Shown here in pieces: positions 3,245-33,094 of a stretch of DNA of 64,000 bases (position 1 is its first letter; the number at the start of each line of letters is the position of its first letter). The notes beneath the pieces were generated by a model that ran no database searches, had not been told where the DNA came from, and saw nothing but the letters and a program-made list of their open reading frames with translations. The position numbers were made by a program, and so were the translations under genes. The DNA is from Saccostrea cucullata (Eukaryota): NCBI RefSeq assembly GCF_032062105.1, contig NW_026929545.1, forward strand, positions 310,001 through 374,000, in the 5' to 3' direction.

Positions 3245-4307
3245 ATGATGATTTCATTTATTGTAGTGCTCATTTTGGGATCAGGTAAGGAAACATTCAA
3301 ATTTACTATTTGCTGATATTTTACGCAATTATGAGTAAATAAATTTTAAAGAAATAGATATTTTCTGTCTTTTAGCATTGGCTGATGAACCTGAGATCAC
3401 TAATCAACGCCAAATATCCAGCAAACCTGGATTCCATAACGAAAAGAATGCAACCTCAACCAAAGATAATAATGCGTCGCATCCCCCATTAAACTTGAAC
3501 AAAGATCCACTATCTACAAAATACCATTTTTTCCGGCCTCACATGAAAGGAGATATAATAAATCAATGGAGCCAGGATCCAATTACCTTTCGTCCACACA
3601 AAAAAGAAGAGAAATTGAATCATCTGAGCCGGGAACCAAATGTCTTTCATGCTCCTCTAGCTACAATGCTGGGTCACTTAATGAAGACGGGAAAGTTTGA
3701 TGTTATCGCCAATTTTGTTCGACTGGAACTAGTTCGAAAAGGGGAAAAGGGACGACACCATCAACGCCCTTTTATGCCACCACCGGATCAATTATTGTAT
3801 AATTACTACCCAAATCCATTGCAGGTATCTTTCCAACCCAAAAAATTAACTAACGAACCAATTAGAGAGCCTCAAGGTGCATTCGTCAAGCCATTACCTC
3901 AGTTCTCTGGTGCTCGTTCTGTACCCAGAGTTGAGGTTGCCCAGTTAATGTCCAAAGTATCTGCACCAGAAGGGACGTACGGTTTCATTATTCCAGAAAT
4001 TTCAGGGCAAAGAATTCCAAGCGAACAATGGTTGTGGTCACCAGTCTCCGCAGAGTCTGTAGGTCAACCACAGCTTATGACAAATTCTGCCTCAGCAGGA
4101 AGCAGCAATATCAGCAGGCGTCCTGTGCAGGTTCCATTTGAAACGATGTATCAGCAATACCAAAAAATGCAAGATGATTCAAAGATTACTGAAAAATCTT
4201 ATTCGCAACTTTCCAAAATTTACGAAATCTTGAACGCTTTGAAAACTATTAAGTCAGAAACTGGTGCTAAAGAGTTGCAAAACCGAAGCATATTGATGCC
4301 ACTTTAA
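3245..4307 (+). CDS. Cluster gene 1: secreted Pro/Gln/Ser-rich protein of unknown function, ~323 aa; exons 3245-3284, 3376-4307
   Basis: MMISFIVVLILGS|gtaagg...ttttag joins in frame to the 309-aa ORF, giving the signal peptide ...LGSALA-DEPE; C-terminal helix-like segment YSQLSKIYEILNALKTIKS. Confidence 0.8.
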
Positions 4308-4489
4308 AAGCCAAATCCAACAGAGGAGGCTTTATGTACAATTTTTGAACTAAATTAGTCATAAAATTTTACTTTTTTGTTTGATCAAAATAACAGTTTT
4401 AATAGTAAAATATCATTCAAACATCTTTTTATTTAGTTTATTTTATCAAGAATTACAGTTGAAATTCTCATTTAAATCTGTGTTTAAGT

Positions 4490-5131
4490 TTACTTTCTCC
4501 CGAAAGTGCTTGGGTCAAAATTTCCAGCAGTCTGTGAGTTTGGATCAAAGTTTCCAGCAGCCATTGAATTTGGATTAAAGCTACCAGTTCCACCGGAACT
4601 TGGTTGGAAATTTCCGGTTCCACCAGCACTAGGTTGGAAACTTCCGGTTCCCCCCGCACTTGGTTGAAAGCTACCGACTTGTCCCCCACTGCTTACTCCA
4701 GTCTGGGTGTTAGACATGCCTCCAGGGTTAAAACTTCCAGCACTCATAGAGTTGGGGTTAAATGCAGATCCTCCATAACTGTGGGAATTTGGGTCATAAT
4801 TTCCAGCGGCCATGTGATTTGGGTCAAATCCTGGAGCGCCGGAAGGAGAGAAAAGTTGTCGCTTAACTGGGCCTATAATTGAAAAATAGTCATTTTCTCA
4901 CAATGCTTTTATTTTTTAGAACAGAAATTCATATTAAAAAAAAAACAAAAAAAAACCACCCAGCTTTTTATATACATTTGCATAGTAAAATCAATTATAA
5001 ATTAACACTTACAAAATTTATTTTGTTCAATTCATAATTGATTATAAAATCCTTTTCTAAATCATTATTAGATATGTACACTTACTTGAAAAGCACAGTG
5101 GAATTAAAACGAGAATAATTGCACCCTTCAT
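4490..5131 (-). CDS. Cluster gene 2: 142-aa secreted precursor with decapeptide F[DNQ]P repeats; exons 5131-5086, 4872-4490
   Basis: MKGAIILVLIPLCFS-SPVKR-QLFSPSGAPGFDPNHMAAGNYDPN...AGNFDPSTF-GRK*; GT-AG phase-1 intron in frame with ORF 4490..4813. Confidence 0.85.
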
Positions 5132-5680
5132 ACTTTATTGGCGTTTTCTACTGTAGGAATAACTGTCTGACAAAATAACGCAAGGTTGGCGCTGTTATTA
5201 CCTATTTTCCTACGTTCCATAAATTACCATAAAATTGATAAGATAAGAAGACTAAACATATAAATATAGATGTGTAAATAATTTTGGGAAAGTTGAAATT
5301 CATATGTTTGACCACCTTAAAGAATATTTGTGATTATTTTCCCAAGAATTGTAATAAATGCTCATTTCAAGTTACACAATTATATGAATAAATACTCCAG
5401 CTGTTTCTCAAAACATTGAAATAAAATCTAGATAATTTAAATAAGTTCAAGAATTCATGTCATAAATTAAAAAAAAAAAAGAGAACATACTTTCAGAAAT
5501 GTTGAAATATTCTATCAAGGAATATCTGCAATAGCAGCTAGTGTTAGATATCCCATACTGCAATCCATATTTTCTTTGATATGATAGAAAAATCTCCAAG
5601 TGAATGAATTGCTAACTGTTGACTTAAAGTTACATGTACAAAACGAATCAAAACCATATTTGTTTTCAGATAATAACCTA

Positions 5681-5831
5681 TACAGTAAAACTCGTTTAGT
5701 ACGAACACAGATATTGAGAATTCACGGATGTAGCGAGGTTATCTTGGATCCCCAAGTATATGAATTTAATGAATTCCTTATATGGATATAACGAATTACG
5801 GAGGACTTCGTTATAACCGAGATTTACCGTA
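5681..5831. mobile_element. Tc1/mariner (Tigger-like) MITE remnant
   Basis: ta-cagtaaaactcgttta ... tataaccgagatttaccg-ta, imperfect TIRs. Confidence 0.55.
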
Positions 5832-5899
5832 TTATAAACCGATTTTATAAACTGCAAGAAAATTTATGAGATACAGTTGCAAAACACAAACGATTTTAG

Positions 5900-6631
5900 A
5901 GCTGCAGAACTGTAGCCCTCCGAAAAAAGATTTTGACAGGCCGGAGAGCTACAGTGCCACCCATTGTAAAAACTGTATATTTATTGCGCACAAAAAGTTG
6001 CGCTCAGTTCTTGATTATTCCTTCCAAATTCTTACGTCAATCGCGAAAAATATAGATTTAAAAAAAATCCTTACTCCTCTATGAAGTTATCTCGTGTTGA
6101 CTTCTGCACGAACTGCGTTGGACCGAATTATCTTGCAAACCAATGTCGCAGTATACTGTAAAAGTACTTTTTTCCGCGTGGTATTAATTTACGCTATGTA
6201 CGCGGTCACAAATTTTCCGCGGAAATTTGTCCAAGCATACTTAATATAAATGTAAGGCATATAGTGACAATCTAGAAAATCCGCGTAATTTTCTACCCGC
6301 GGATTAAACAGAAATTGAGATTCCGCGGAATTATGAACCCGTGGAAAAAAGTACGTCTACAGTAAATAGAAGAAATTTTCGATGATCTCAATTTCAGGGC
6401 CAGGAGGGCTATTAACAACAATTATAAGGAATGTTTTGTTGTGGAAACAGTGAAAGAATATGTTAGGAACACAAGTAATATTTTGATAGACAGTTTAAAA
6501 GCATGGAGAAATAATCGAGAAACAGCGCACTTTTTTGTGCGCAATAAATATACAGTTTTTTTTTTTCAATGGGTGGCACTGTTGCTCTCCGATCTGTCAA
6601 ATATTTTTAGGAGAGCTACAGTTCTGCAGCT
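5900..6631. mobile_element. MITE family A, copy 1 (TIR agctgcagaactgtagc)
   Basis: agctgcagaactgtagc / gctacagttctgcagct; related copies at 10318 and 47745. Confidence 0.8.
6154..6364. mobile_element. TA-flanked MITE nested in family A copy 1
   Basis: ta-ctgtaaaagtacttttttccgcg / cgtggaaaaaagtacgtctacag-ta. Confidence 0.7.
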
Positions 6632-7351
6632 AACGGTTACATATATCATTTAAATATATCAGAATGCTGAATATATGAATGTACAATGGGAAAAAAGATA
6701 TTCATTTTCAGAAGCACTTAGTGAAGTATCCCCCACATTAAAGTATGATTGTCAACAATATGAACCATGCGTTTTTATCGTGTATGTCAAGGTCACACAT
6801 CTTTAATTGAGTTGGAGCATGCATATTAGACTCTTTTGAGAAGTTTGCATCAAACATTGTCAAAATTCTTGGTCTACCGACATTCATTTTTCTGGTACTT
6901 TAGATATGTTAATTTCAACTTTTCTGCACAAGCTTATAATATGGAAAAAGAATTGAAACAATATTTTTGTCATGTGCCAGACAATTTTTTTTCTCCATGA
7001 AGGCAGATTTTTTGTAGGTTCCATAACTTGTTATTTTCTGAAAGCTAATTTTTTTTTTCAAGAAGAGAATAAAATTGTATGGGTATTGTTTGTCAATTTT
7101 CCCGTAAGTGCGTCATGTGTCATTTTAAGTATAAAGAAAACAGTGATCTGCCTTATAGGGCCTACAGAAAAAAGTACTCAACAGTCCTTTTTAGTGTATT
7201 TTGACTAAAATACACTAAAATTATTTAAAATTGACCCTTTCACAGGTGGTGTTAACGTTTTTTGATAAATTATTGATAACACATATGATAAAGGTCAAAG
7301 TGGTTAATTTTCAAATTTTGTCAAAATAAAATTTTATTGACTTGTAATTAA

Positions 7352-7713
7352 AGCTGAACACGATTTGTAAAAGGAATGTATCCGCCATATTCGATTGTTC
7401 ACGCGCTTTATCTTAGGACCTTTATATATAGCCGCTTATAACGGCGTACTTCTTCTATAAAGCGGGAAAGAAAGATACCAAAGAAACTTGCATCTTACGC
7501 ATAGGTCAATGTAGTATACAAAATAAATACACATAACTGCAATAAGTATTAACAAAGGTAATGCAAGATTACCAGCACGTGTCGCCATTCCACGCCGATA
7601 TTCGTGAAAATAAGCAGTCAGGTGTGACGAAAGCTAAAGATATACCCCAGTGCTGATATCGTAGAAAGTATTATCGAAAATGGCGTATGCCTATTTACGA
7701 GTCGTGTTCAGCT
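7352..7713. mobile_element. TTAA-flanked MITE (Kolobok-like)
   Basis: ttaa-agctgaacacga ... tcgtgttcagct-ttaa. Confidence 0.75.
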
Positions 7714-7779
7714 TTAACCCAATGGTACAATTATCTCCCAATACAGGTGAAAACAATTATCCTCTGAATATGTTGTAAA

Positions 7780-8140
7780 GTAACCTATATCAAAAAGTGA
7801 ATATTGTTACCTATGTCGAATAATGCACATATTTTCCTATATCGAATTGTGCATAATGTTACATATGCCGAATAGTGCACAAAGTTTCCTATATCGAAAA
7901 GTGCTTATTGTTATCTATGTCGAATAGTACAAATATAGTAACATTTCGAAAAGTACACATTGTTTCTAGGTTGAATAGTGCACATAGTTTCCTATGTGGA
8001 ATATTGCACATAATTTTCTATATCGAAAAGTGCACATTGTTATCTATGTATAAAAGTACACGTAATTTCCTATGTCTATAAGTGCACATTGTTACCTATG
8101 TCGAATGGTGCACATAGTTTCCTATGTCGAATAGTGCAGA
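7780..8140. repeat. Degenerate minisatellite, ~26-28-bp unit
   Basis: About a dozen diverged copies of tgcacatagtttcctatgtcgaatag. Confidence 0.75.
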
Positions 8141-8560
8141 AACAATGACAGAGCTTAATCTATGACGGTGTTATCTTTAACAATGGACAAGCAGTCTATA
8201 TACAATAATGTATATAGAACTATTCCACGGAGTTAATCGCTTGTAATTTCTGGGAAAATTTAACTTTACATTTTTAATTATATTAAAGGTGTAAACTTTC
8301 ATATTGAAAACTGATTTTATGTGTTTGTATTTTACACACCTTCTTTCAAGACGTTTGACTTGAAAAACTACAATAGAATAGGAAGTTTTGGAGCTGTTTA
8401 CATGTAGATGTGTAGAATTCTTTTTAAATACTTGTAGGTGATCACACCGCTTTCCAAAAAGTATTTTTTATGTGATTTGTTTATTGTCGTTGTTGATTTT
8501 TAAAACTATTTCGCAAAAGTAGGATTATTTACAAGTAAATTATATAAGACTCCATATGAT

Positions 8561-9873
8561 TTATTTCTTTCCAAATGCATTAGGATCAAAATTTCCAGAT
8601 CCTGAACCAAAACCATTAAGTGCGTTGGGGTCAAATGTTGGAGTCTGGAATCCGTTGGGGTCAAATGTGCCCATACCAGAATCTGGCGTACTGAAACCTC
8701 CACCTGCAATGAACAATCACAAAATAAAATTCTTCTATCCTTGCACCATATATAGAAGCAAAAAATTGCTACACTTCAGTAATAGAAACATTATTGTATA
8801 TTTACCAAACCCACTTCCACCAAAACCATGGTTGAGGGCATTTGGATCAAATGCAGCATGAGTTGACGCCATGTTCATTCCGAACCCCCCGCTGCCAAAA
8901 TTTTGGTTTACTGCATTGGGGTCAAAAGGTGCTATAAAACAAAAATCTGATAGATTACCAGACTCACCTGAGACAACGTCCTCTGATATGTATACGTTTT
9001 ATATGAAATTCGCCATTTTTTAGCTACAAATTAAGCTCTCGTCCTTCTCTTAAGGGACATGATTTGAACAAATCGGTTTCTACACTTCAAGACGTTTTGC
9101 TATCGATTACTGCCTCGTTCTTCCTAAATTTATTTTTTTACATTCATTCTTTCTATATATTCCAATGTAAAACCATTACCCTTTTATGACCCCATCCCGG
9201 CCTATCGCCTTGAATATGAACCTACACTCAGTAAAAGAAGAGATGTTCCTTAGTTAATATATTTAATTTTCCATCATCCATAGATGAATGGTGCAAAGTT
9301 TTGTGAAATTGGCAATGTGATTCTTGAGAAGACAATAAAAACGTGAAAAGTGAATATACGTGTACGTAAATGAATACAGATAAACGCTGGAAAATTGACA
9401 CCAAACAACTTCGTTTTAGCCTTCGGCGAAATCAATTACTTAAAAATATGGGGAAAATTCTTTTGATTGCATTACCGTTTTGTGCCAAATCTCAAAATAA
9501 GAATAGAGGATTGACACTGCATAGAGGATATTTTAAATACTGTACATAGATATTTTTTGGTTGAAATTCAACTTCCGATATTTCTATCCCAGAATAAAAG
9601 TCTATTAAATATACTGTTGTTGAAATGTAATAATGATATAAAAATAAGAGGGAAATAAATCAAATTACAAATTAATCAGATGTATACAATAATCAAAACT
9701 TAATTGAAATGTATAATATATTCTTTTCCAAGAATGACAAAAAAATTAGACTTTTATATATATTGCTGATAAAAAAAAAGCCATTGTTTCAAAAAAAAGT
9801 TTTGAAATACTGAATGATTACCCCCAAGACACAAAGAGATCAGGCCTAACAGAGCCAGGAATATTCCAGCCAT
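8561..9873 (-). CDS. Cluster gene 3: 106-aa secreted FDPN/Gly-rich precursor; exons 9873-9822, 8931-8806, 8703-8561
   Basis: MAGIFLALLGLISLCLG-APFDPNAVNQNFGSGGFG...FDPNALNHGFGG...FDPNGFQTPTFDPNALNGFGSGSGNFDPNAF-GKK*; both introns GT-AG, phase 1; reading frame absent from the ORF track. Confidence 0.85.
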
Positions 9874-10317: not shown

Positions 10318-10764
10318 AGCTGCAGAACTGTAGCTCTCAGAAAAAAAAAATATTGACAGACCGAAGAGCTAAAGTACCACCCATAGAAAAAAGTAAATAC
10401 CCGTATTTATAAAAAGTGCGCCGTTTCTCGATCTTTTTCCTCCGTGTTTTTCAAACTGCCATCTCAAAATATTACTAACCCCATGTTCCTAACATATTCT
10501 TTAACTGTTTTACACAAACATTGTTACCATAAAAACATTTCGTTTCTACTTCCATTTTGGGTGGCAAGATAATTCAGTAAAACGCGCTCGACTCGATGTC
10601 AACTACAAGCGTATTTGAGTTCAGGTAAGATTTCAAGAAATTAATCCAGAACCGAGCGTAACTTTTTGTGCGAAATAAATGTACAGTTTTTGCTATGGGT
10701 TGCACTGTAGCTCTCTGGTCGTCTATGCCAATTTTTCAGACCAGCGAGCTGTAGATCTGTAGCT
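10318..10764. mobile_element. MITE family A, copy 2
   Basis: agctgcagaactgtagctctc / degenerate gagctgtagatctgtagct; internal similarity to 5900-6631. Confidence 0.7.
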
Positions 10765-12040: not shown

Positions 12041-15000
12041 ATGGATTTTATAAAAATCACCATTATATTTTTTTTAGTCACAGGTAAGAAAAATTTATTC
12101 AGAAATTTGGTAAATACTTCAAAGAAAACGTCAAAATGTTAATCTAGCTCAAATAAATTAGATTTCTTTTAGTAAAAATTTGACATATGTGTGATTATAT
12201 AGCTTGATTATCATGGAATGCACAGTAATAGCATTGGAAAAATTATATTTTGTCATAATATTATCATGATAATTTTTACAGAATACAGTTGCATTCCATT
12301 GCCCGGGTTAGAAGGATTGTCATCATCTGGTTCCAATGTATACAAATCACAAATACCAACCGACGAAAATATTCAAAACTTTATCAACGAAGGAGCTGAT
12401 TTCAACGCAATTTTAAATCCCAAAACGAAACAAAAATACCAGACTAAAGATTCAGCTTCTAGTATGCCGATTGTAGCGCAATCAAACTCGCTCCTGAACT
12501 TGTTGGAAAATATAAATGGAGTTCAACTTTTGAAATTATTAAATAACATGATAAAGTCACCAAACGGAGAACAAACCGTTTTAACCAACAACGAGATGAA
12601 ACCTCATGAAATGAATAAAAATCCCTCCGATGCAGGATCTGCGAACAATCAGGAGATTCATCGATATTCATCAATAAGTCCTAGCACTACAAGAATTCCC
12701 TCGAAAAACATTTCCCGAATTCCCTCTGATGCTAGTCGACAAGACTTACAAATAAAGAATATGCAAACAACTGGTTCCGGTGCAACAACTAATGGTGGTG
12801 ATGAGAGTACAGATGAGCATAAACTGTTACATTCATCTGGAACACATAAGCCGCTATCCTCTATACCCTCCGGCACAAATGAAGTGAATCTCCCTCAAGG
12901 CTTTACTGGTGGGATAAATTCTGGTGTAATGGGGGTTCAGGCACTGAATACCAACAACAACGCAGGCATGTATAACCTAGCTCAGCAGTACACCAACCCT
13001 ATGTCGATGTTAGCTGCAGGGATGGGTTCGACAGGAGGAGGAGGAAGCCTGGACAACGTGGAGTCTTCTCCAAACACAGTTGATAATGAGGCTCCACAAG
13101 TGGGAAAGACTCCTGGATTTGATCCCAATCGACTGATGAGCTCTTGGGCAAGTACAAATAACTTCAACCCCGGAGAGTATAACGTTGGACAAAACTTTAT
13201 ATCAACAGACGAATGGACAAAATATGCAAATCAACCCACTGGTTACACTGGTTTGATGCAACATATAACTCAAAACACAATGGGGAGCAACAGCAAAAAA
13301 GAAAATCAAGAAAAGCATACGGAAAACAAATTTCCACAAGAGCATTTTCAAACACAAGGATCGTCTCTGGACACATATCAAAATTCGGCATTGACTGCAA
13401 AAATGAATTTTGCTCCAAATAACATGATTATGCCTGTGTCAAATCCTCAGATGCCGAAATTACCCATAAAATTCAACTTTGATCCCGATAGTTTGAATTC
13501 ATTTACAGGATCCTTTCGGCCTGGGCAGTTTGCACCTGTACCTGCAGCTAATGTAGGGGAAACAGACTTTGGTACGAATGTTATAAAACATCATTTATCA
13601 GGCTTTCCAGATAAAATGCTTTCAAAGCACAATCAACAACTTCAAAATTTAAAGAAAACAGAATATCAGAAATCTCCCGAGATTCCTAAATTTAAACCAA
13701 GTAAAAATGCATTTGAAAATGTTCATATGGGGTTTAGTCCTGATTTTTTCGTAGGACCAATATATCAGTCTTCGAAGAAAATACCACACGTGAGTGATGC
13801 ACAAAGAGCAAAGTTAGAAAATCGAAGCGATCATAAATCTGTTAAAAGCAAACTCTTAGTTTTAAAAAGAGATCAGAATGTTGTTTCTACCACAAGTACC
13901 TCTAGATCAAATTTGACCGTTCAGACAACAACACCCTCTGCTTCTACTACCACAGATAAAACTATAACAACTCCTGATACCTCAAAGACTACATCCCTTG
14001 TAGACATTGGGGGATTCAACCCGGATGAAGTGAACAGACCGGTTATGTATAACCCAGGTATGTCACCAGGAATGAGTGTTGAATCATTCCAAAATTTTCA
14101 GTACAGTCCTCAACATCATAGAGTCAATTCAACTTCAACAGGTCAAACCTTTCAATTTACTGGTATGGGATTTTATCCATCAGAGGTCAATAATGCAAAG
14201 ATGAATTTTGATGTTAATTCGCAACTCGGTATCCCAGGTGGATCTTCATCGGTTAGTGGACAAACCTTTGGTGGAGGTTACGATCCCATTAAAACAAATA
14301 TTCTAGCCATCCAAAATCCATTCTCTACCAACAATCAAACTCAAGGGCCATCTTTCACGGCTGGTAAGGTGTCTGGATTTGGATCTGCCTTCATTGGTTC
14401 CTTCAATCCCAACAGTGTAAATGAAGGTATGATGAAGGATCTGTTGAACTCCCAGGCAAACAGTAACAGTAGTGGGAATTATTTCGGTATGGGAATGACT
14501 GGCTTTGACACGTCTGGATATGGAGGTAATTTCGACCCATCATCAGTAAACAATGCTGTTTTCAATCCAAATGAAGTAAACAATATTAAAATGCACTTTG
14601 ATCCAAGCGAGATGTTGGATAAAAACCCCGGATACGACACCGATAAAGCGCTGGCATATAAGTTTAATCCAAATAACATTAATAACATGCAGGCAAATTT
14701 TCAGCCATTATTTCTACAAAATAACAACGTCCATGAACCTACAAATAGCACTCATGATCCCAAAACCAATCCCTATAATGGCGCTAATTTCGTACCTGGT
14801 TTACTTGGAGGAGGAAGCAAAAATGAAATCCCAATCTTTAATCCAGCAACAGTGAACAATGCTCACATGAACTTTTCCCCAATCGGAGTGAATAACCTCC
14901 CAGACATGCCAAAAAATAACAGCAAGACGAGCAATACTACCAACTCATCAGATGAATCATATTCTTTCTTTAATCCTAATGACATGATTTCCAACATGAA

Positions 15001-15175
15001 TAACCATCCTGCCGGAATTATGAATTCTGTTGAAACACCAAACAAAGAGAGTCGGTCAGAGAATGCTTTTGTCCCAGGTTTACTAGCAGGTGGAGAGGGC
15101 ATTCCCGAAAGTGACAAAATAGAACGAAAAAACGAAAAAGAACAACCTCGAAGTTCGAGTTTGAGAGATATTTAA
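12041..15175 (+). CDS. Cluster gene 4: 978-aa secreted Asn/Ser/Pro/Met-rich protein with many F[DN]P motifs; exons 12041-12083, 12282-15175
   Basis: MDFIKITIIFFLVT|gtaag...tttacag|EYSC-IPLPG in frame with the 985-aa ORF; AATAAA at 15207-15212. Confidence 0.88.
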
Positions 15176-15693
15176 TGCCAACAATTCGATGTTTTTTTCC
15201 TTACTAAATAAAGCTATACTGAATATATATATATTCTCGATTACTTATTTGCTACGTTGAGGTTATGTTTGTAAGTATGGACAACCTATAATTCTAGCTG
15301 TATAAGTAATTTTTATACAGTTTAATTTTAAACACGAAAACATATCACCGAAATTTGAACAAGCAAGTCGTATTCTACGTTATCAGAAACAAAAGACAAC
15401 CAACAATAAATAGAAGTATGTGATGTGACAATATCATTGATATTTAAAACAAGAGAAAGAATTAACTCTGTCGTTTTGAGTTGGACTTATATCGTTCACC
15501 TGTCTAACAACTTCCGAGGACTATTTCTTATCGTTACCTCGTGAGCTACTGATGATAAGATTTAGTACCGTTTAATTAAACACAGGTCTTCAACGTTTGA
15601 CACAAATATATCGCATTGTTACATGATAATTACGGGAAACGAACGCATCTGAACCAACATAAGTGTAGACACATATCAGTCTCTCGTGGAATT

Positions 15694-18600
15694 ATGTGGC
15701 TGCCATTAATATTAACGGTAGCTTTAATTACCACTTGTGCTAGCCGTGACCTCAGAGGTAGAAAATTTATTAATTCTCTAATTCAAAGAAATTTGAATGA
15801 AATTGACTGATAGAATTTAAACATTTTAAAAATATTTTATTGAGTGCTTCGCTAGTGAATGTATGTAATTGATAATTTTGTTTATGTTTGCTTATTTTTT
15901 TCCTTTTAAAAATGTTTTCGAGATATTATTTGTATACAGTCCGCCAAACACAATCAGGGAGCACAAGCAGTGGAAGTACTTCCGGAAGTGGCTCTAGTTC
16001 CGCTTCAAGTCAGCCCAGTGGGGGATCTAGTTCCGGTTCTGGCCAGCAGCTTTCACAAAATATGCAGCCGCCATCATTTTTACTCAACCCTTCACAATTT
16101 ATGAGTGGCTCAAGTGCGTATGTATCAATATGAATGAGCAATTAAGTCTACCAGATAATTTTTTACAAAATAAAGATTGATACTAGCATAATTAAGACTT
16201 AAACAAGTAATGAAACACATTTATCTAAGGTGTTATTATATAATGGTGTTAAGATTTCTTTGGCAGATCCTCTCCATCAAATCCCGGTGCGGGTAGTGGA
16301 GGATCTAGTGGTTCGTCGAGTAGCGGATCCAGCAGTGGAAGTTCATCTTCACCTTCCTCTAGCAGTGGGAGCTCATCTTCTCCATCCTCTAGCAGTGGAA
16401 GCTCAACTTCATCTTCCTCTGGGAGTGGTAGCTCAACTATCCCAAAGTTTGATCCTAACAAAGTCAACCAAATTCAAGCAAGCTTTTTAGATCCGTCCAA
16501 ACTACAGCTTGGACCATCTGGCGGTGGTGGAGGTGGATTTGATCCCGACCAGTTTAATAGCATGTCATTTAATTTCTTTAATCCCGGTGCACTTTTAAGT
16601 GGCGGTGGAAATCAAGGACCATCCGGAAGGCGTAAGTTGTTTTTGTTTATCAGATGGTTTTACAAAAAGAATGTTCGTTTCATTTAATAGTAGTAATAAG
16701 AAAAGAACTTTTTTATTGAGCTTATTAAAAATTCACTGAATATGCCCTATAATAAGGATTCTTGTATTATTTTTTCATTTTGTAAGGGAGAAGACAAGCG
16801 GCAAGTTCTGGGGGTAGCAGCAGTAGCAGTGGAGGAGGTGGAGGTAGCAGTCCACCAAAGTATGATCCAAACAGTGTCAACAAACTCACATCAAACATGC
16901 TAGACCCATCCTCTTCTAAACTTGGAGCCAGTAACGGTGCCGCTGGTGGATTTGATCCAGATCAGTTTAATACAATGCAGTTCAACTTTTTCAACCCCAA
17001 CCAGATGTCTGGTGGTGGCGGCGGCGGTGGTGGTGGTAGCAGTGGAAGCAGCGGGAGTGCACCAAAGTTTGATCCAAACAGTGTCAACAAAATCCAGGCC
17101 AATATGCTGGACCCGTCTACTTCTAAGCTTGGAGCCAGTGGTGGAGCAGCTGGCGGATTTGATCCCGACCAGTTTAACACTATGTCCTTCAATTTCTTCA
17201 ATCCTCAAGCACAAGTTGGAAAGAGAAGTAAGAATTTGAGTTCGTATTCCTAAATTTTTAACAGAAATTACAGAGCTCACCTCAACTAATGTTGTCTTTA
17301 GAAAGGCAAAGTCCCATACTAAACTGATACTCTGGTAGTGTACATCCCAAGATGCAGCATCTATGCCAGTTTGGTTCAGGTTTGTCTTAATGTTATTTGG
17401 GAATGAACCTGCTCTTTAAACTTGAACCTGGTCCCTTTTCTGGAAAAAAAGTAGCTCAAATTCAGAAACTATATCAACCTTGATAGTGTGCATCAATAAA
17501 TGCGACTTTATTGTAATATTGGTTAGCATAGGGCTTGTAGTCACTTTGCAAATAAACTACTCCGAAAACTATAGAATGGTCACTCATCTGGATAACTGAG
17601 GTCAAAAACAACGCTTTAGCAAGTCCGGTAGTACGCATCCTTAGATGCGTCATCCTAGTTTTGTCAGCATAGGGCTTTTTGCAATTGTTATTTGAAAATA
17701 AGACCTGCTCCAAAACCATTAATTTATAGCTATCTAGAAATGTACAGATCCAGCATCCAAAACAATCCACTTATCTGGAAAATATAGGATAGATCCAGCA
17801 TCCAAAGCAAACCAGGTAGTGTTTATCCTTGGATGTATCATCCATGTAAATTTGGTCAATATAGATCTAATAAAAACTTGGAAATTAGATCTGATCCAAA
17901 AACTTTCACCTTGTCACTCATCCGGAAAATGTGGGTCAGGTCAAGCATCCGAAGCAAGACTCATAGTGTACAGTTTTAGATGTATCATTTGTGTAAATTT
18001 GACCCAAATAAGGTTTATAGTTACTTGGGAATGAGACCTGATCCAAAAATATTCACCTGCTCCAAAAACATTAACCTGGTCCTTATTTAGCTGAAATTGT
18101 AACATCTGAAACCTTGACTGGTACAATGAAACATTCTACAAACATCTTCAATGCATCTCAGCTCAATTCAGGGCATAAAAGAATTTGATAAGAAATCTGC
18201 TCCAAAAAACTTTAACATAAGACGCCGACGGTTTTACATTAGCTTCTCCAACTTCGATGAGGTGAGCTTATTATTCGCTGAGGTGAGCTTAAAAAAGAGA
18301 ACATTGAGCAATTTATATTTCGTCCATAGGCCTCTTAAAACGTCAGAGCTCTCCATCTGGCCCGAGCAGTAGTGGTGGAAGCAGCGGAAGTAGCAGTGGT
18401 GGAAGCAGTCCACCAAAGTATGATCCAAACAGTGTCAACAAACTCACATCAAACATGCTAGACCCATCCTCTTCTAAACTTGGAGCCAGTAACGGTGCCG
18501 CTGGTGGATTTGATCCAGATCAGTTTAATACAATGCAGTTCAACTTTTTCAACCCCACCCAGATGTCCGGTGGTGGAGGCGGCGGTGGTGGTGGTAGCAG

Positions 18601-20320
18601 TGGAAGCAGCGGGAGTGCACCAAAGTTTGATCCAAACAGTGTCAACAAAATCCAGGCCAATATGCTGGACCCGTCTACTTCTAAGCTTGGAGCCAGTGGT
18701 GGAGCAGCTGGCGGATTTGATCCCGACCAGTTTAACACTATGTCCTTCAATTTCTTCAATCCTCAAGCACAAGTTGGAAAAAGAAGTAAGAGTTATAGTT
18801 CGTATTCCTTAAATTGTTAAAAGAGATTACAGAGCTCACCTCAACTAATGTTGTCCTTTAGAAAGGCAAGACTAACCATACTAAACTCATTATCCTTGGA
18901 TGCATCATCCATGCAAGTTTGGTCAATATAGATCTAATAGTTACTTTGAAATTAGGTCTGCTCCAAAAACTTCCACCTTGTCACTCATCTGGAAATGTGG
19001 GTCAGGTCAAGCATCCGAAGCAAGCATGGTGGTGTACATCCCTAGATGTATCATTTGTGTACATTTGGTCAAACTAAGGTTAATACATATGGCTACTTGA
19101 AAAATGCAACCTGATCCAGACTTAAACCTGCTCAAAAAGCATAAAACAAATCCATATTTTGCTGAAACTGCAACATCTGAAACCTTGACTGGTGCAATGA
19201 AACATACTACAAACATCTCCAATACATCTCAGCTCAATTTAGGACATAAAAGTACTTGATAAGAAATCTGCTCCAAAAACTCTAACATAGGACCTCGTTG
19301 TAGTGAGCTAATAATGATTTGAACTTATAAAAAAGACAATATTGAGCTATCTATATTTCTTCCACAGGTCTCTTAAAACGTCAGAGCTCTCCATCTGGCC
19401 CGAGCAGTAGTGGTGGAAGCAGCAGTGGTGGAAGCAGTCCACCAAAGTATGATCCAAACAGTGTCAACAAACTCACATCAAACATGTTAGACCCATCCTC
19501 TTCTAAACTTGGAGCCAGTAACGGCGCGGCTGGTGGATTTGATCCAGATCAGTTTAATACCATGCAGTTCAACTTTTTCAACCCGAACCAAATGTCTGGT
19601 GGCGGTGGTGGTGGTAGTGGCAGTGGTGGAAGCAGCGGGAGTGCACCAAAGTTTGATCCAAACAGTGTCAACAAAATCCAGGCCAATATGTTGGACCCGT
19701 CTACTTCTAAGCTTGGAGCCAGTGGTGGAGCAGCTGGCGGATTTGATCCTGACCAGTTTAACACTATGTCCTTCAATTTCTTCAATCCTCAGGCACAAGT
19801 TGGAAAGAGAAGTAAGTACTTTGTTCACATTTTGAAAATGATTTTAGTTTTATTTAAATTGTTTCTCTGATGTTTATACTGATGTTCTTTTTATTAAGAT
19901 CTTCGAAGACGTCAGACCTCACAAACATCAACTGGTTCCAGTGGGTCAACATCTGGATCATCAACCAGCGGCGGTTCAAGCAGTAGTTCATCTTCCGGTG
20001 GCGCTTCTCAGATGATGAGCCCAAGCATGTTTATCAACCCCAGCAATTTTTTAATGGGAGGAAACTCTGGAAGCAGTAGTGGAGGAAGTTCCCCTTCGTC
20101 AACTTCTTCCTCCTCCCCTTCCACCTCCTCCTCTTCTGGTGGAAGTGCACAACAACCTTCCTTTGATCCAAACAAAGTTAATCAAATTCAGTCCAGTTTT
20201 CTGGATCCTTCAAAGGCACAGCTCGGTTCGGGTGGCTCAGCGTCAGGAGGATTTGACCCTGATGCAGTCAATACTCTGTCATTTAACTTTTTCAATCCTA
20301 AAAATCTTCTTGGACGTTAA
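15694..20320 (+). CDS. Cluster gene 5: 789-aa secreted Ser/Gly-rich polyprotein with eight copies of a ~45-aa FDPN...FNFFNP module; exons 15694-15757, 15940-16117, 16267-16631, 16787-17227, 18330-18785, 19368-19811, 19899-20320
   Basis: Signal peptide MWLPLILTVALITTCAS; all six introns GT-AG and frame-compatible (2370 nt total); junction sequences G-RRRR-Q, G-KR-SLL-KR-Q (twice), G-KR-NL-RRR-Q; ends LL-GR*. Confidence 0.88.
16787..19811 (+). repeat. Tandem triplication of an exon plus flanking intron within gene 5
   Basis: Exons 16787-17227, 18330-18785 and 19368-19811 are near-identical; introns 17228-18329 and 18786-19367 share both ends (attacagagctcacctcaactaatgttgtc; aacatctgaaaccttgactgg...). 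Confidence 0.92.
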
Positions 20321-23671: not shown

Positions 23672-26600
23672 ATGCTGCCAAATTTCCTTTTATTAACTTT
23701 GATACATTCTATAGCAGCCGTACCCGTTCGGTATGTTTTGGATGTTCAGAAACTTTTTTCTGGTAAGTGTAAATCGTCTCTTGCAACTTTTCAAAAAAAT
23801 TGATGTTATAAAAGAATGAAGTTGAAGATTTGAAGAATGATTGTTGAATGGTAGATGAATTGAATAATTAGATGGTACTTTTAATTTTATTTGAATATTT
23901 TTTGTTTTATATCATCAATCAATCAAAGCTGGATCGGTCCAAAGAAGACAAACATTTGATCCTAACGCCATGATGTTTGCAGGCGGAACTTCCTCCTCCG
24001 GTTCCACATCCAGTAACTCCCAGTACATAGGATCCTTCAACCCTAACCAAATGATGAGCAGCATGGGAAGCGGAATGAATATGTTTAATCCTGGTTCTCA
24101 ATCCGGTGGACAGACTTCGTCACAATCATCAGGTTCCACGGCAACGTTTGATCCTACAAAACTCAACAACCAGTTAAGCAGCTCGTCTGGATCCCAGACC
24201 AGTGGAATGGGTGGGGGATTTAATCCAAATCAGATGATGGGTGGTGGAGGTAGTGGAACATCCACACAACAATCAAGCTCTGGCGGAACTCAGTCCGGAA
24301 GTACAAGTGGAACAAGCAGCTCAGGAACTGGGACCTCGGCATTTGGTGGTAGTTTTAATCCAAACCAACAAGGTGGAGCTCAATTCAACAATCAACTAAG
24401 TAGCTCTACTGGGTCCCAGACAAGTGGTATGGGTGGGGGATTTAATCCAAATCAGATGATGGGCGGTGGAGGTAGTGGAACATCGAGTGGAACTCAGTCC
24501 GGAAGTACCAGTGGTACAAGCAGCTCAGGAACCTCAGCATTTGGTGGTAGCTTTAATTCAAATCAGCAAGGTGGTTCTCAGTTCACAAACCCCATGTCAC
24601 AAATGGGAGGCGGGCAGGGAGGGGCATCATCATCCCTCGTTCCAAATTATAACCCCAATAACGCTGCAGTAAATATGGCAGGCGGGTATGATCCAAATGC
24701 AGCTAACTCCGGACAGGGGACTGGAGGCAACACCCCAACTTTCACCAACGGAATGGGAATGAATGCTAAGCAGCAGTCGATGGGAGGAGGTTCGATGCCA
24801 AGTGGAAATGGCATGACACAGCAATCGGGAAGTGGAAGCGCCATGCTACAAAGTGGTACGAGTAGTGGAGGTGCCTCGTCATTTGGAAGTTCAACAAGCT
24901 CAGGAAGCAGTTCCACTGGAAGCAATACACCTGGAAGTGGAAGTGCGTCCTCCTTTGGAAGTTCATCTGGAACTGGATCAGGCACTTCTTCAAGCGGTAG
25001 TGCTTCTTCTTTTGGTAGTCCAAGTGCATCAGCGAGTACTTCCCAAGGAGGAGCAAATTCATTTGGAAGTCCTACAAACACACAATCTGGGTCTTCAAGT
25101 GGAGGCAGCAGTTCAGGTGCCTCTGCATTTGGTACTCCTATGTCCGGAAGTAGCTCTAGCAGCGGAACATCACAGACTTCCGGTGGGACTTCGATGGCTG
25201 GATCTTTTGATCCTATTAAAACAAATGTCGAAACAACTCAGTCCGGATTCAATCCCTTAAGTCCAGTTTTAGGTATGCTGGAAATATCGATACTCTCACT
25301 TTACACTAAAGTTATTAAAATGAAAAAACGAAAATTTAATCACCGTTGCTCCATTTGGTCTAAAAAATATTTATTCTTCTTTTTTAATAGGAAAGGTACA
25401 AAACTTCATGGGACCCCAGGGTGGTTGTATGTATACCGTTTATCTGTATGTGTCCTAACAGTAATCACATACCTTCTGAATTCCTTTTGGAGACATACTC
25501 TAATTAGTATATAACTATTTTGCTATATTTAAGCATCTGGTGGCACGTTTGATCCTGGTGCAGTTAACACACAAATGGCAGTACAGGGTGCTAGTTTGAA
25601 CATGTTCGGTGGTAAGTACATGTAGAATACACCCAAATACTAATGAACAGTGATAAAAGAACATAGTCTCTGAATGTATAGAATGTTTTATACCATCAGG
25701 CGCTGGAGGTCGGGATGCAAATAAAATGGATGCTAATTCATTAATGGGTGGAGCTCCTGGAATGATGGGTGGGGCGAATCAGGTCAACGGTGGGTCCAGT
25801 GGTGGTAGCGCCGGGGCAAACATGTTTAATCCAATGGGATCAATGATGAGCGGTTCATCCAGTGGCGCTGGTGGGACTTCCGGTCCAATGAATATGATGA
25901 ATACAATGGGATCATCTGTAACAGGACGAACACTCAATTCGGGTGACGTAAAAACTTTTTTATGCTTAAAAAAACCAAACCAAACAAAACAAAAAATTTA
26001 AAGAATAATAGGGCATGAAATACTTATATCTTGACCACGTATTACACTTAATTAACAGGAGGTAGCTCCGTGTCATCTTCCAATCCCATGATGCCTGGTG
26101 GACTTCCACCAGGCGGAAATCCCCTGGATCCAATGGGGGCAATGTCTGGTAATGTTAACTGAATTATCAAATCTTCTCACAAAAACCTAGAAGGAGTGCT
26201 TTTGCTTTAACGCCATTGTATCATTAACCAAAAAATAACTTGCTTTGCATTGTGTTTCAAACGCTTTGTGTTCTCAAGTATTGGTTTTAAAGAAGTGGCT
26301 CGTAAAAAAAACAACATTCAATCATCGCATCGCTATGGAAAGCTAAAGGGTTCAATTTCTAAATTAAAATTCTATATCACTGTTCGCATTTTGTAAAGTC
26401 CACCTTACCTGAAATTTAAGGTGTTGGAATTTTCGAATTTTTGCTTTTTCTGAGAATAGGTTTTTTTCAAAATCATTAAAGCTTATATAGCCTCATTGAA
26501 TTTAATTGAAGAGTATTAAAACCAAGTTAAGAAATGCTTGTTGGCATTTGTAATGTACTTGTCAATCATCAGCTTTCTATCCAAGTCTGTCTTTATGCTA

Positions 26601-26999: not shown

Positions 27000-27070
<71 letters not shown>

Positions 27071-27907
27071 GAAGTTAGTAACCTTCAAACCTTGATTTTT
27101 TCACAGGAGGAGGATTAACCGGGACCCAGTCAAATCAGTTCTCAATGCTAGGTAAGCGCTTTTTATCTATTTTCATTTTTGCCTTACAAAATATTGTTCG
27201 AAAACGCATGTCTCATTAATTTTTTCCCATTTTTTTTAATACAGGAAAACGTGCAATTAGAGGTAATCTTTATTGTTTTTTCTAACGTTGATTGGAAGCC
27301 AAATGAGGAAAGTTTCGAAATGTATTGTGATAAAATTCCCCTGAAACTTATCAATTTGAGCAGAATTGCAAGATTTATTTAGAATCAAAAATATTTACCA
27401 TCATGTGATTCTTAATTTTGCGAGGACCACCTACTTAGTTTTAGTTTAGTTTAAACCATTTATTTATTTTTAAAAATACAAGCATAGTTTTACAATACAG
27501 ATATTACGTTCGGCTCACACACGATTCGGAAACAAGTTTCAAAAACTTAACTTTATTTGTCTGCCTGTAATTTATTGAAGTAGTGATTTCTTGCTGAGTA
27601 GCACAGAATAATACGGTTTAAAGAAGTTATAATTGCAAGAAAATAAGAATTTGAATACTGCGATACACGAATGCACTTTCACTTGATCGGTACTATTTCT
27701 TTAAAAATTAAATGTATTATTTTCATTTTTTAAAGGTGTGGTCAAGGTATGTTCATTTTTTTAATTTCATATGTTGAATTTTAATACATGTCCCTAAAAT
27801 TTTCAACCGCACTAAAAATAAAATGATCTGAATTTCAGAGAGCAGAAGACAAATACGTGGACTTGTTCTTGTCGCTGTTGGATATTCTTGAGAAAATGTC
27901 AAGATGA
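23672..27907 (+). CDS. Cluster gene 6: 684-aa secreted Gly/Ser/Met-rich precursor with F[DN]PN motifs; exons 23672-23762, 23929-25272, 25534-25611, 25700-25942, 26059-26148, 26605-26670, 27107-27151, 27245-27262, 27736-27746, 27839-27907
   Basis: Signal MLPNFLLLTLIHSIAA; VQRR-QTFDPNAMM; C-terminus FSML-G-KR-AIRGVV-KR-AEDKYVDLFLSLLDILEKMSR*; ten exons in frame (2055 nt); the micro-exons are the least certain part. Confidence 0.8.
27004..27067. repeat. (AT)n microsatellite
   Basis: About 32 uninterrupted AT dinucleotides in a gene 6 intron. Confidence 0.95.
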
Positions 27908-28254
27908 ATAGTCTGTTTTTCTTTTTATGTATATATAAAAAAACATAGTTCTATAACTTATTAGTTTATGTACATTGATTGCATGGCATAGGCGAATTAA
28001 TCACTACAGAACTCCTGTCCAATTCCTGTACTAACAGTGATGGTATATTCATTTCCTTTCTGTATCGAAGATTGATAATATTTCAAGGGTATAGTTCATT
28101 ACCATAATGCTGAAATATCTGAAAATATACTAAAACCTTTACGCTCTAAATATTTCTAAGCAAGTATGAAATTTTAACTCCAAACTAATAAATCATTTCA
28201 AAGGTGTGAAATTTATGTTTATGCCTAGAAATATTTGCGACAAGTGCCTGTAAA

Positions 28255-28556
28255 AACTAGAGGTACTGTAAGCAATGAGCTCACTAAATGATACCCCCGC
28301 TTCCCATTTCAATATAATGACAGTGTCCTTGTTTTGCTGTGGGAAACCCAAAATATGTGTCGGATGAAAAAATAAAATAGGAGGTGCACAATGGCAATAT
28401 GTAATAAAGATTCTGTGTCATCAAATTTCATTCAGTGGTATGAAAGCAGTCTGAAAGGATAAGAGATGGGTATCCCAAAGCGTAACAGACGGACGGACGG
28501 ACATACCGATTACTATATACCCTCCCGCTTTTCAAGCGGGGGGGGGGGGGTAAAAA
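28255..28556 (+). mobile_element. Short Helentron/HINE-like non-autonomous element
   Basis: aactagagg start, (gacg)n microsatellite near 28490, 3' hairpin cccgcttttcaagcggg followed by an A-run. Confidence 0.6.
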
Positions 28557-30029
28557 AATGTTCATAGATTTTCCGAAATAAATTATATTACCTTTTCGTA
28601 GTATTCCCTTATTTTGTTTTCGAGGTACATGTAGGATGACACCCATGAATTCAATACCCCGATGAATTGTAGATTTTCAAATGTATAACGACTCAGTTCT
28701 CCTTCATTCACGAAATTAAATCCCCACTAGCCTATATATCTTTCTCATATCACGAAAATCTTACCCTTTCAGTTTGAAAATATGCGCAACAGATTTTTGA
28801 GGACAACAAGAGTCAAAACAATACATGAAACTCGATATTTAAAAATCATTGCTACGTCCATGAAATTCTAGATAAAATATGGAAATAATACACAGCAATC
28901 TTGCTTTTTAGTCCACTGAACCAATAAAAAGGAGGAGGAAGAGAGTGAATACGAACCTCCGGAAACTTCAGATTTTGGATCATGTGCCATGGAGGGCAAA
29001 AGATATTGCGAAATGTTGACTTTAAATGAGATCAACTTAACGGTACATTGACATCCTTTTTTCATCAAGTTTTTTAATTGTCAATAGTTTGTCTCGTTCT
29101 ACAAAATGTTTGTATGTAGAACATGTTCTTGCTTATCGAATCAACTCCACATGATGATGTTATTTCTATATAAATATTAAATGGAAACTGACGATAGAAA
29201 AGTTGAAGTGAATGCGTTTTTCATAAATTTTTCTAATAAAAAATCTAAAAATTAAACAGAAGTGTAAGATTCTGTAGTATCTTTTATATCAAGTTCACCG
29301 GGATATAACTTAAAAAGAAAGGGATCTACAACTACTTTTCCCAGTCAAGCCAGTAAATTAATAAAAGAATCCCAAGAAGATGGTTTCATTTAATTTTATT
29401 TAAGTATTTCTGATTTAAATTAACGCCGATCCAAAGTCATGCGCTAAGGAACAAAATTGGCTTTTATGGCTCTTCGGAAGCTCAATCCTCTTCAAGCAAA
29501 GTTCCGCGTCATTTTTTAAGAGGAAAATATTTCACAACTTATATACCAATATTGCAAAATCCCAAAGCCTTTTCAGCTTTTGACAATAGAAAGGTAAATC
29601 TAAGACTGGTGCAGTTAGTGCATTTAAAAAAAAAAAAATCTTAATTATTAATCTTATCGTATTTATGTATCTGTTAAACTTAAAGAGCAAAAAATATTGA
29701 AGCTGGGAACAATTAATGAAGAAGCACAAAAATTTGTTTTATAAAAAGGTAAAAAGATTATATCATCAAATGGATAAAATACGTCCAGACTGATGGCGAT
29801 CGAAGACGGACAATGAGATTACAGATATTATAATTTTGTTCCCTTCCTTGGAAGGGATTAGTGACCTGATAAAGAGGCAGGTGAAAGATAAATTATCCTT
29901 ATGTACAATAAATGCTAACCGGAAAAAAATACGTCATGTAAAGGATGAACTTCCTGTTACATAATTTAACGGTAAAATATTGATACCTTAACGTTCTTTA
30001 CTTTAATTTCGATCTAATTACTTGTAACC

Positions 30030-33000
30030 ATGGCGGTTAAATTTGTGTTGATTGGACTGCTTTGTTTAAAGGTTTCGGAGGGTAAGTACGAAGATGTATT
30101 TTTGAGAGGTTGGAAAATACCTACAAATCGTACGTCTTCACTTAAATTCCTTCTATTTGTTGATTTAACTTACTTTTCCAAATATGAAAATAAAGTACAA
30201 ATATAGGACAAGGCTGGGGGTCATGATGCAAAATGCTGATACCAAAAATGTCTTGTCAGAAGGAATATGCACAAAAGCTATGTGAAGGTTCTAGCACTAA
30301 TAGTTAAAAAGTTAAAGCCAAGGTTAAAGTTTATTAAAATTTTGCAAAAGTAGGTCAAACTGCAAAGTCAAGAGGTCAAATATATTTGTACCCAGCGAAA
30401 GATCTTGACGACACACGGAATATATATGTAAAATATATATATACATGTATATAAATACATGTACCTACATGTAAAACTCTTTTTAGATTTTAACAGTAGG
30501 CGTTAAAATGTATTTCATATAAATCAATTTCAAATTCCAAAACAGGACTGCCTATGACCTATAACCCCGCCTTTTATAAGGGCCTGAATATACCAGATTA
30601 TAACCCGAACAGCATTCCCTTTGTCAACTACAACCCTATGAAAGAACAAAAGCCGAGACCCTTCTCCGAGTTTCAGTCCATCACAACATCTGTTCCAGAG
30701 GCTCCTAAAATGAATGTGTTCGGTAACCCTGGAAATGCTGGCATCAAGTTCGATCCTAAAATAGTAACACCTTCACCATTCGACAATTTGAAGTTTGATC
30801 CAAATAACCGAAACTTTTTAAAAGGTTTCAATCCCAACTCTTTTGCAGACAAAGGTAAATTTTTCTGGCATTTGTTTTTACTTTTTTCACATTGTCAAAT
30901 TTGTTTGAGATTAGATGCTACAATCTACCTTTCTTTTCTCAGTAGAGCCATTTCAGGTAGTGCAAGTAACAGAATCAACGGCCGGGCATGACTGGGACGG
31001 CGGATGGCCAGGTCTGTAGGTTATCCAACTAATATAGACGTTTCACTTAAGATATGGGATTGTAGTTCACAGATACAGAAACAATAAAAAGGTGGATGTA
31101 CTCGTACACTCAGGCACTGCCAAATTTCACCATTTAAATCTAGAAAAATCAGGGTATAACAATCTAGAGTTAAAATACAGTACTATAATTGGAAACGAAA
31201 AATTCTTCTTAATATTATCGTGTACGTAAAACACAGATCACTATTGTTACAGATCACTAAACGGATACACCATGGAATAATATCCAAAGCTGCTGACATC
31301 TAGCTTAAAATTTCCCCGTTTTTATTACATTTTGCAGCTGGCAAAAGTAATGGAATGGTTCAAACAAAAGCAAACGAGAAAACAGAATCAGGAGCAAACT
31401 CCTCTGGAAACAGCGGAAAAAATGTCTTCGGTAGCTCAGGAAAATCCTGGGATGGAAGCTGGCCAGAGGGTAGTTAGAACGTCATATCACAACATAATAC
31501 AGATAGTCCGCAGATAAATATTTCATTTCAAGCAAGCATGAAAATGATTGCATTTTAAAAATTGCAGGGGATGTAAAAGAATTTTCCTCAAAAGCTACAG
31601 AATCATGGAATTCAGCGGTAGGCGCCAAACAAGTCAATAAAAACTGGCAAGGTAACCGACCTCCCACGTACTTGAAACGATCTCGACTGAGTACTAATAT
31701 TTTTTATATTAATAGTCTCATATTCTTTATCATTTCAGATAATTCAGGAGATTTCTCAAATAAAGCTACAGATTCATGGAACAAAGCACTGAATCAGGGT
31801 AAAAATCAAGGTAAATCAAAACAATCAGAACTCGTTTGACTATTCATTGAATAGTGCAAATTTGTGTGTCGGAAAAATTGAGATCATTGAACACAGATTT
31901 TTTTCCCCCGGAGAGTTGCATTTCTGCAGCTATTCATTGAATAGTTATACAAGGTATATTTCATTTCAAACGAGTATGTTATATTAAATTGCACGGGATA
32001 TAAAAGAATATTTGCATCCACTGAATATTATTTATTTTTTCTCCAGAAAATATCAGATAAAAATATCGAACAGGGATACATTATTGCAGCTATTACACGG
32101 AATATATGGTTTTATATGTCCCAGATTCTTTATCATTTCAGATAATTCAGGAGATTTCTCAAATAAAGCTACAGATTCATGGAACGAAGCACTGAATCAG
32201 GATAAAAATAAAGGTAAATCGCATATTTAATATCATACATAAATATACTAAAATGATGTGGATACGTTGTACAAGATTTTGTATTCACACCAAACAAGCA
32301 AATACCGGTACGTGACAATATAATGATTACCCCAAATTACAACAATGCTTACATATGAGTCATCTTAATCTCAGCTGAGATTTGTCTGGATTTTGATAAT
32401 CAGACTGGACAAGTCAGTGCAAATATCGAACAAGTAAAATTTAAGCTGAAATTTTCTGAGAACTTCTCTACATTGGAAGTGAAAAGGGTTTAAATGCATA
32501 ATTTTTTTTTGACCAATTAAATGAAAAAAAAAACCTTGGTTCAATTGTTGTATAGCAAAATATTTGGAATGAAGTTTCATTGATGTAATAAGATGTGACA
32601 TGAAAAATTATCGTCATTGGATTTCCAGCACATTGATACAAAAGTACCCCCTTGATTTTAATACTTTGTCTTCTATCGCTTTTAAAATACTAGTATAAAG
32701 AGGACATAAACAAGGACCCCTGCAAACTCCAGATTTGCCTTGGAATCAAGTGCTTAGGAACACTCCATGGTCAATTTCAGTCAAAAACAAAACAAAGGTC
32801 TGGCAATCTGCATGAAAAAAAAAGTCTGCCAAAATATGACCAATGATGGGTTATATCTCTTAACAAGGTCATAGTAATGACCATAGAATTTAAAGGAGAT
32901 TGCTGAAATCTATGTAACATCAGCTTATAAAATGATGCCAAATGCCATGAACCGATGACCTTTTAGGTTTCCACTTGCTAAAACTTTCCAACAATGTACT

Positions 33001-33094
33001 CCTCATTCTATTTTCAGGAAACAAAAATGGACTGGAAGAAGTGGATGAGATCATTCAGAGCTTGATAGCGGCACTAGAAAAGCTGTATTCATAA
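30030..33094 (+). CDS. Cluster gene 7: 288-aa secreted protein with [FY][DN]P motifs and Trp-containing exon repeats; exons 30030-30081, 30546-30854, 30943-31011, 31338-31469, 31568-31651, 31739-31810, 32142-32213, 33018-33094
   Basis: Signal MAVKFVLIGLLCLKVSEG-LP; YNPA, YNPN, FDPK, FDPN, FNPN; all introns phase-1 GT-AG; ends LEEVDEIIQSLIAALEKLYS*. Confidence 0.8.

Follow-up and report, generated by a model that had tools for sequence, protein, structure and literature searches.

What do the adjacent, motif-rich genes of one locus in the oyster Saccostrea cucullata make, and does their product belong to any known secreted system? The genes lie at positions 3245-33094 of a 64,000-nucleotide (nt) stretch of contig NW_026929545.1 (positions 310,001-374,000; hereafter the window), where an initial annotation had described seven secreted proteins with prohormone-type processing signals. 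The cluster is ancient and apparently undescribed, shared by oysters, pearl oysters and scallops, and its best explanation, to which we give a probability of roughly 0.55, is that end-capped, unglycosylated chains of sticker-and-spacer type would self-assemble into a bivalve extracellular material, be it a film, fibre or gel. The genes, with window coordinates and product lengths in amino acids (aa), are as follows.

3245-4307, plus strand: G1, two exons (3245-3284, 3376-4307), 323 aa, signal peptide, Pro/Lys-rich, without the motif
4490-5131, minus strand: G2, exons 5131-5086 and 4872-4490, 142 aa
8561-9873, minus strand: G3, exons 9873-9822, 8931-8806 and 8703-8561, 106 aa
12041-15175, plus strand: G4, exons 12041-12083 and 12282-15175, 978 aa
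15694-20320, plus strand: G5, seven exons, 789-aa polyprotein with five Gln-to-amide units of 133-178 aa
23672-27907, plus strand: G6, ten exons, 684 aa, a pro-piece followed by a 615-aa chain and a short amphipathic tail
30030-33094, plus strand: G7, seven exons, 252 aa, modelled from sequence only

All seven models could be rebuilt, with GT-AG splices yielding stop-free open reading frames (ORFs) of these lengths. Each gene opens, as had been claimed, with a short exon for a hydrophobic signal peptide (40, 46, 52, 43, 64, 91 and 52 nt in G1 to G7), called from a hydrophobicity scan of the N-termini, and a phase-1 intron follows. Given the fact that this arrangement is widespread among secreted proteins, the shared layout is weak evidence of kinship, and G1, whose C-terminus forms an amphipathic helix, is a cluster member by position, having in common with the others only the signal exon and the location. 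No further long ORF was found between the cluster genes, the gaps containing short repeats; the number seven, however, proved too low. An eighth gene of like design, G0, lies at contig positions 302044-303928 (G000:C11682), 6-8 kb before the window. Its signal exon, of 55 nt, is followed by a phase-1 intron, and its product is a chain of about 500 aa, rich in Ser, Gly and Met, that bears ten motifs, starts at an Arg-Arg site and ends in Gly-Arg-Lys-Arg. The cluster is made up of at least eight genes, G0 to G7, and is single-copy in the 1.17-Gb assembly. Paralogues elsewhere in the genome were sought and none was found for G0, G2, G5, G6 and G7; a short DNA pattern occurs genome-wide at control level, and shared TATA or cAMP response elements are not evident among the cluster genes.

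The pattern [FY]-[DN]-P-[NDS], on which six of the seven genes had been said to be built, indeed occurs 0, 6, 5, 9, 18, 7 and 3 times in G1 to G7, against shuffle means of 0.03-0.27 per protein, and a six-frame count gave 50 occurrences within 3245-33094 against one in the other 31 kb of the window. A chance origin of the motif is ruled out by the shuffles. The pattern is real, yet it had been defined too short, extending to aromatic-Asx-Pro-x-x-hydrophobic-Asn or, over 78 occurrences, to aromatic-Asx-Pro-Asn-x-hydrophobic-Asn, which fits a helix N-cap with a hydrophobic staple. Two AlphaFold models place their only short helices at the motifs; both are of low confidence (predicted local distance difference test scores of 58 and 44), and no stable monomer fold is indicated. 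In G5 the motifs are arranged with a spacing of 13-17-13 in eight 48-aa modules, all on the plus strand.

16442-16585: module 1
16855-16998: module 2
17062-17205: module 3
18413-18556: module 4
18620-18763: module 5
19442-19585: module 6
19646-19789: module 7
20156-20299: module 8

The module is 48 aa long in 33 of 34 aligned copies, with the Asx positions and their spacing invariant. Spacer lengths vary around fixed motifs. When 1.84 billion representatives were searched with a profile, 28 matches came back; the module is present in all of them apart from a HEAT-like repeat protein and a protein that is probably bacterial, both weak matches. Because G4 holds a diverged copy (hhalign E 1.4e-5) and shares another motif with G6, these three genes are probably homologous. 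The G5 introns sit within the cleavage linkers, and five units are present here versus four in Saccostrea echinata, whose G5 is laid out alike but lacks one exon, suggesting that units were gained or lost by exon duplication. The G5 repeats are not an assembly artefact, which is ruled out by introns that differ (88-92%), by seven synonymous changes in exon 6 and by this shared layout in S. echinata. An abundant repeat starts in G5 introns (17251-17300, 18810-18858), was duplicated along with the exon, and draws most of the reads in the region.

The processing signals are placed exactly as the initial annotation had them, with basic-site-Gln starts in G2, G5 and G6 and Gly-basic ends in G2, G3, G5 and G6. 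In G2, Lys-Arg at 4864-4859 precedes the Gln of a 119-aa chain that carries a motif every 10 residues and ends in Gly-Arg-Lys (4501-4493); the 86-aa chain of G3 ends in Gly-Lys-Lys (8572-8564), and in G6 an Arg-Arg (23943-23948) precedes Gln, with a Gly-Lys-Arg end at 27151-27252. Together with G0 these genes make the capped set, and G1, G4 and G7 lack capped ends. G4 comprises two halves with motifs, a stalk rich in Thr and, at 14171-14881, a conserved C-terminal region containing the diverged module, and its Lys-Arg site at aa 543-544 is preserved in oysters and the pearl oyster. G7 has its motifs in exon 2, a duplicated pair of exons (5 and 6) and an amphipathic C-terminal helix. G6 (27839-27907) and G7 (33018-33094) each end in a separate exon for a similar acidic amphipathic helix, which G1 also has, and these helices are possible granule-sorting or pairing elements.

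In pteriomorphs and unionids alike, a basic pair is found upstream of the module wherever the flank is visible, with Gln as the next residue almost without exception; Gly with basic residues stands 4-14 residues past the last module, again with few exceptions, and units of the scallop type are about 57 aa long. Basic pairs are cleavage sites of convertases, Gly ends are amidated through carboxypeptidase E and PAM, and an N-terminal Gln is cyclised by glutaminyl cyclase, so that cleavage, amidation and pyroglutamate formation are predicted from established knowledge if the chains meet these enzymes. Since the residues next to the amide and their distance to the core differ from unit to unit and between species around an unchanging core, the comparison suggests that capping serves to remove charge and lend stability, and not to form a receptor-binding amide. 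The capped mature chains are 86-615 aa long and free of Cys, as had been described for the cluster, and consist of 29-56% Gly+Ser, 12-17% Asn+Gln, 2-7% Asp+Glu, 0-4.3% Lys+Arg and 0-1.7% Tyr, with a net charge of 0 to -6; G1, G4 and G7 are charged and carry N-glycosylation sequons.

Despite their richness in Asn and Ser, the capped chains G0, G2, G3, G5 and G6 contain no sequon at all. Ser or Thr stands at the +2 position of Asn in 0 of 124 cases, compared with 18% at neighbouring offsets (P ~1e-11), and in Pinctada G6 in 0 of 48. Local and motif-fixed shuffles support the depletion for G0, G5 and G6, G2 and G3 being too short for significance alone. This depletion, which we count as independent evidence, suggests that the capped chains traverse the endoplasmic reticulum (ER) and that they would be harmed by glycans, which is what one would expect of chains that pack tightly and differs from a mucin.

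Similarity searches with the spliced models were run exon by exon. In S. echinata, G1 to G6 keep their order and strand (G1 plus, G2 and G3 minus, G4 to G6 plus), a called 106-aa gene standing at the position of G3. The ratio of nonsynonymous to synonymous substitution rates (dN/dS) against this species is 0.30 for G1 (76% identity), 0.03 for G2 (98%), 0.30 for G4 (76%), about 0.025 for the G5 modules and 0.13 for G6, whose exons 1-7 are preserved there and whose large exon is also preserved in Pinctada; on these ratios, the cluster is under purifying selection. A search with G6 exon 2 was uninformative, as low-complexity matches dominated and the known orthologue was missed. The scallop Argopecten has a plus-strand G1 (a weak match at the same position, E 0.003), a minus-strand motif gene, and G4 and G5 on the plus strand, and Pinctada has a minus-strand motif gene followed by plus-strand G4, G5 and G6, with a long Gly/Ser/Phe repeat at the position of G3. 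G5-type genes are also present on a bivalve-like contig. In the unionids Potamilus and Sinanodonta the family is represented by a single, isolated gene with a signal peptide, Lys-Arg-Gln, G0-like motifs, one module and a Gly-Lys end. Judging from these matches, the family spans Pteriomorphia and Palaeoheterodonta, which split in the Ordovician or earlier.

Several observations concern the annotation of these relatives. Between the G3-like gene and G4 of Pinctada lies an uncalled secreted Gly/Phe/Ser repeat gene (L007:5841-7734, minus strand) without the Asx-Pro motif, whose composition resembles elastomeric proteins. The annotated Pinctada G4 (776 aa, L007:9078-12331) misses a signal exon near 8417 and the coding segment 9078-9962, the real gene being longer, and the G5 and G6 region is annotated as a single 1435-aa gene. 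In the scallop, an EF-hand gene after G5 (L008:19981-22796) overlaps the span of a long gene called there (1091 aa).

In RNA run X1, which derives from a relative with about 94% identity, contigs are spliced at G5 15757-15940, 16117-16267 and 16631-16787, and a repeat exon is joined to exon 7. RNA thus bears out the first three G5 introns and the exon 7 join, whereas exons 8-10 of G6 (18, 11 and 69 nt), which are tentative, and the whole of G7 are read from the DNA. Depth in X1 is 18.8 for G4 and 13.4 for G5, while two deep poly(A) runs of raw reads gave almost nothing for either gene, with one spliced read; G4 and G5 are both transcribed in one sample and nearly silent in the others. Logan matches for G4 are genomic. 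The X1 contig of G5 extends unspliced back as far as 15220, a short way beyond the poly(A) signal of G4 (window 15207-15757), which is either a 470-nt leader or read-through from G4. The secretory and processing part of the earlier description is strongly supported by the conserved signals, G5 splicing in RNA, purifying selection and sequon avoidance.

No named family had been recognised at the outset, and none was found: Pfam and PDB gave no significant profile or sequence match for the cluster proteins and Atlas no usable one, relatives are called 'hypothetical' or 'uncharacterized', and literature searches by motif (about 8.4 million papers) and by accession were blank, a weak negative since figures and many supplements lie outside the searchable text. 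The proteins may already be present, unnamed, under gene IDs in proteome or marker lists. The high Tyr and Lys of mussel foot proteins, the adhesives that use 3,4-dihydroxyphenylalanine (DOPA), are not found in the capped chains. Abductin contains over 50% Gly in Phe-Gly-Gly-Met repeats, and shematrins have Gly/Tyr repeats and retain a basic C-terminal tail after maturation; the cluster chains match neither of these general definitions. Like abductin and the ligament Met-rich protein (LMP) they are repetitive bivalve proteins with Gly, Phe and Met (7-9% Met in G0 and G6), but set against abductin as generally described they are dominated by Ser and Asn, with Asx-Pro turns and 17-21% Gly. They are secreted, modular, Gly/Ser-rich and lineage-restricted as are mussel byssal proteins, shematrins and the Pinctada byssal protein TSP-1, but lack DOPA-ready Tyr/Lys repeats, Cys and collagen, vWA and TSP domains, and both of their ends are capped. 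TSP-1 has a GGSS/GSS spacer similar to theirs (PMC4597212) and is without the Asx-Pro motif. With FG (phenylalanine-glycine) nucleoporins, prion-like domains and functional amyloids they share aromatic stickers in Gly/Ser/Asn/Gln spacers and the lack of a predicted folded monomer, an analogy and not a homology, as the cluster chains are secreted, predicted to be proteolytically matured, and carry a Pro turn motif at fixed spacing. Pyroglutamate is known on the bivalve matrix proteins LICP and Prismalin-14 of Pinctada (PMC13080008), and hormone-style processing of a structural secretion is therefore not new in itself; on the cluster chains it is predicted. By analogy, the family would work like known low-complexity secreted building proteins while being a member of none of those tested. 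The type of system is known but the family is new, and in it double end-capping, glycan avoidance and a fixed-length module form an unusual combination.

How, then, could such chains build a material? Each would enter the ER by its signal peptide, as the hydrophobic N-termini suggest, and those of G0, G2, G3, G5 and G6 would stay free of N-glycans, their sequons presumably selected away. The enzymes named above would then cut and cap them, removing terminal charge and blocking exopeptidases. The resulting near-neutral, Cys-free, Tyr-poor chains, in which aromatic-Asx-Pro turn motifs act as stickers within Gly/Ser/Asn/Gln spacers, would condense in the granule and set after release by motif-motif contacts, without DOPA or disulfides, and the fixed-length module of G5 may be an ordered assembly unit. 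G1, G4 and G7, being charged and glycosylatable, with amphipathic helices in G1 and G7, could be accessory, anchoring or sorting partners. Candidate sites are threads of larvae or juveniles, membranes of the periostracum or prisms, the ligament, and gill or gonad secretion. Co-packaging, sticker-driven condensation and setting are steps that we infer and hold at slightly better than even odds.

The capped chains do show aromatic stickers in polar, predicted-disordered spacers, and the self-assembly reading fits five of the eight genes cleanly (G0, G2, G3, G5 and G6). Synteny, the conserved module and caps, sequon depletion, composition, variable spacers and amide ends, lack of a stable fold, restricted expression and the pyroglutamate known on other bivalve matrix proteins together tilt the balance somewhat toward it. 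Several points weigh on the other side. The unionids have a single small gene and not a cluster; the X1 depth is modest (13-19, from a tissue given as a code), below the flood expected of a dedicated gland; the precise 48-aa unit, excised in scallops as an amidated peptide of about 57 aa, would also fit a ligand; and none of the papers checked on shell, ligament and byssus shows the motif, a weak negative given that figures and many supplements are not searchable. Tentatively, one may go further and picture a bivalve-wide biomaterial system older than the pteriomorph/unionid split, in which neuroendocrine enzymes mature the cluster products into chains free of charge and glycans. A turn module of 48 residues in fixed register would then let these chains set under water with no need for DOPA, disulfides or metals.

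Alternatively, the proteins could be shell or ligament matrix components that steer calcium carbonate growth by regularly spaced Asp/Asn-Pro turns, as LICP does in pearl-oyster ligament. The bivalve-only distribution in the searches, the invariant Asx register and the pyroglutamate of LICP and Prismalin-14 (PMC13080008) are in line with this, and since trypsin would release no peptide of 7-35 aa from G0, G2 or G3, these could have escaped shell proteomics. We nevertheless regard a mineral role as unlikely: the capped chains are far from the Asp/Glu-rich composition of acidic matrix proteins, and the motif was unmatched in a paper on insoluble proteins of Pinctada nacre, prism and ligament and in a Tridacna shell supplement, although G4 and G5 would yield many tryptic peptides. 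LICP itself is a 10-residue acidic peptide, quite unlike these long, near-neutral, repetitive chains with amidation signals.

That a large amidated hormone or neuropeptide is made from G5 and its unionid relative, with the neighbours as degenerate paralogues, is suggested by the classic multi-copy layout (signal peptide, basic-pair sites, Gln starts, Gly-basic ends, tandem units), by the short scallop-type units, by the very low dN/dS and by the low overall expression. Neuropeptide precursors, however, release short products with a conserved amidated C-terminal motif. Here the products reach 500-615 aa and are 10-50 times longer in most genes, conservation lies inside the chain and not at the amide, and two catalogues of ganglion neuropeptides (PMC8398477, PMC5996578) do not contain the motifs in their searchable text and supplements, from which figures are excluded, which makes this reading improbable.

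Granins are acidic and helical proteins, and an internal granule scaffold, granin-like or an amyloid-like core that packs other cargo in gametes or gland cells, might use the same convertase sites, aggregation-prone composition and amphipathic helices (G1, G6, G7). The cluster chains are unlike granins, and eight genes with varied spacers seem excessive for a storage core, so that we give this role little credence. Immune effector polyproteins of haemocyte or epithelial granules are least credible. Invertebrate defence peptides do include Gly-rich, amidated, pyroglutamate-capped products cut from polyproteins, but the present chains are neutral to anionic (Lys+Arg 0-4%), single-copy and strongly conserved (dN/dS 0.025-0.13), the opposite of the cationic, hypervariable antimicrobial families of bivalves.

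Under the favoured self-assembly reading, the cluster would show how underwater materials can be designed without DOPA or cysteine, and how a prohormone pathway can be turned to building bulk material; if instead the G5 unit is a hormone, it would be a bivalve peptide family absent from the two catalogues. In either case these are conserved, single-copy, easily expressed candidates for a bivalve secretion that would be partly invisible to standard proteomics, because the N-termini are predicted to be blocked and G0, G2 and G3 lack usable tryptic peptides.

The downstream flank (window 33600-50700) is of housekeeping type, with an RBM25-like gene on the minus strand, which we take to be such from inspection by eye, MRPS12 on the minus strand (Pfam PF00164) and a mitochondrial carrier on the plus strand from about 49100. 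Tandem arrays with periods of 26, 166 and 156 lie at window 7784-8138, 59253-60546 and 63149-64000, and inverted-repeat elements lie near 5925-6608 and 10642-10718.

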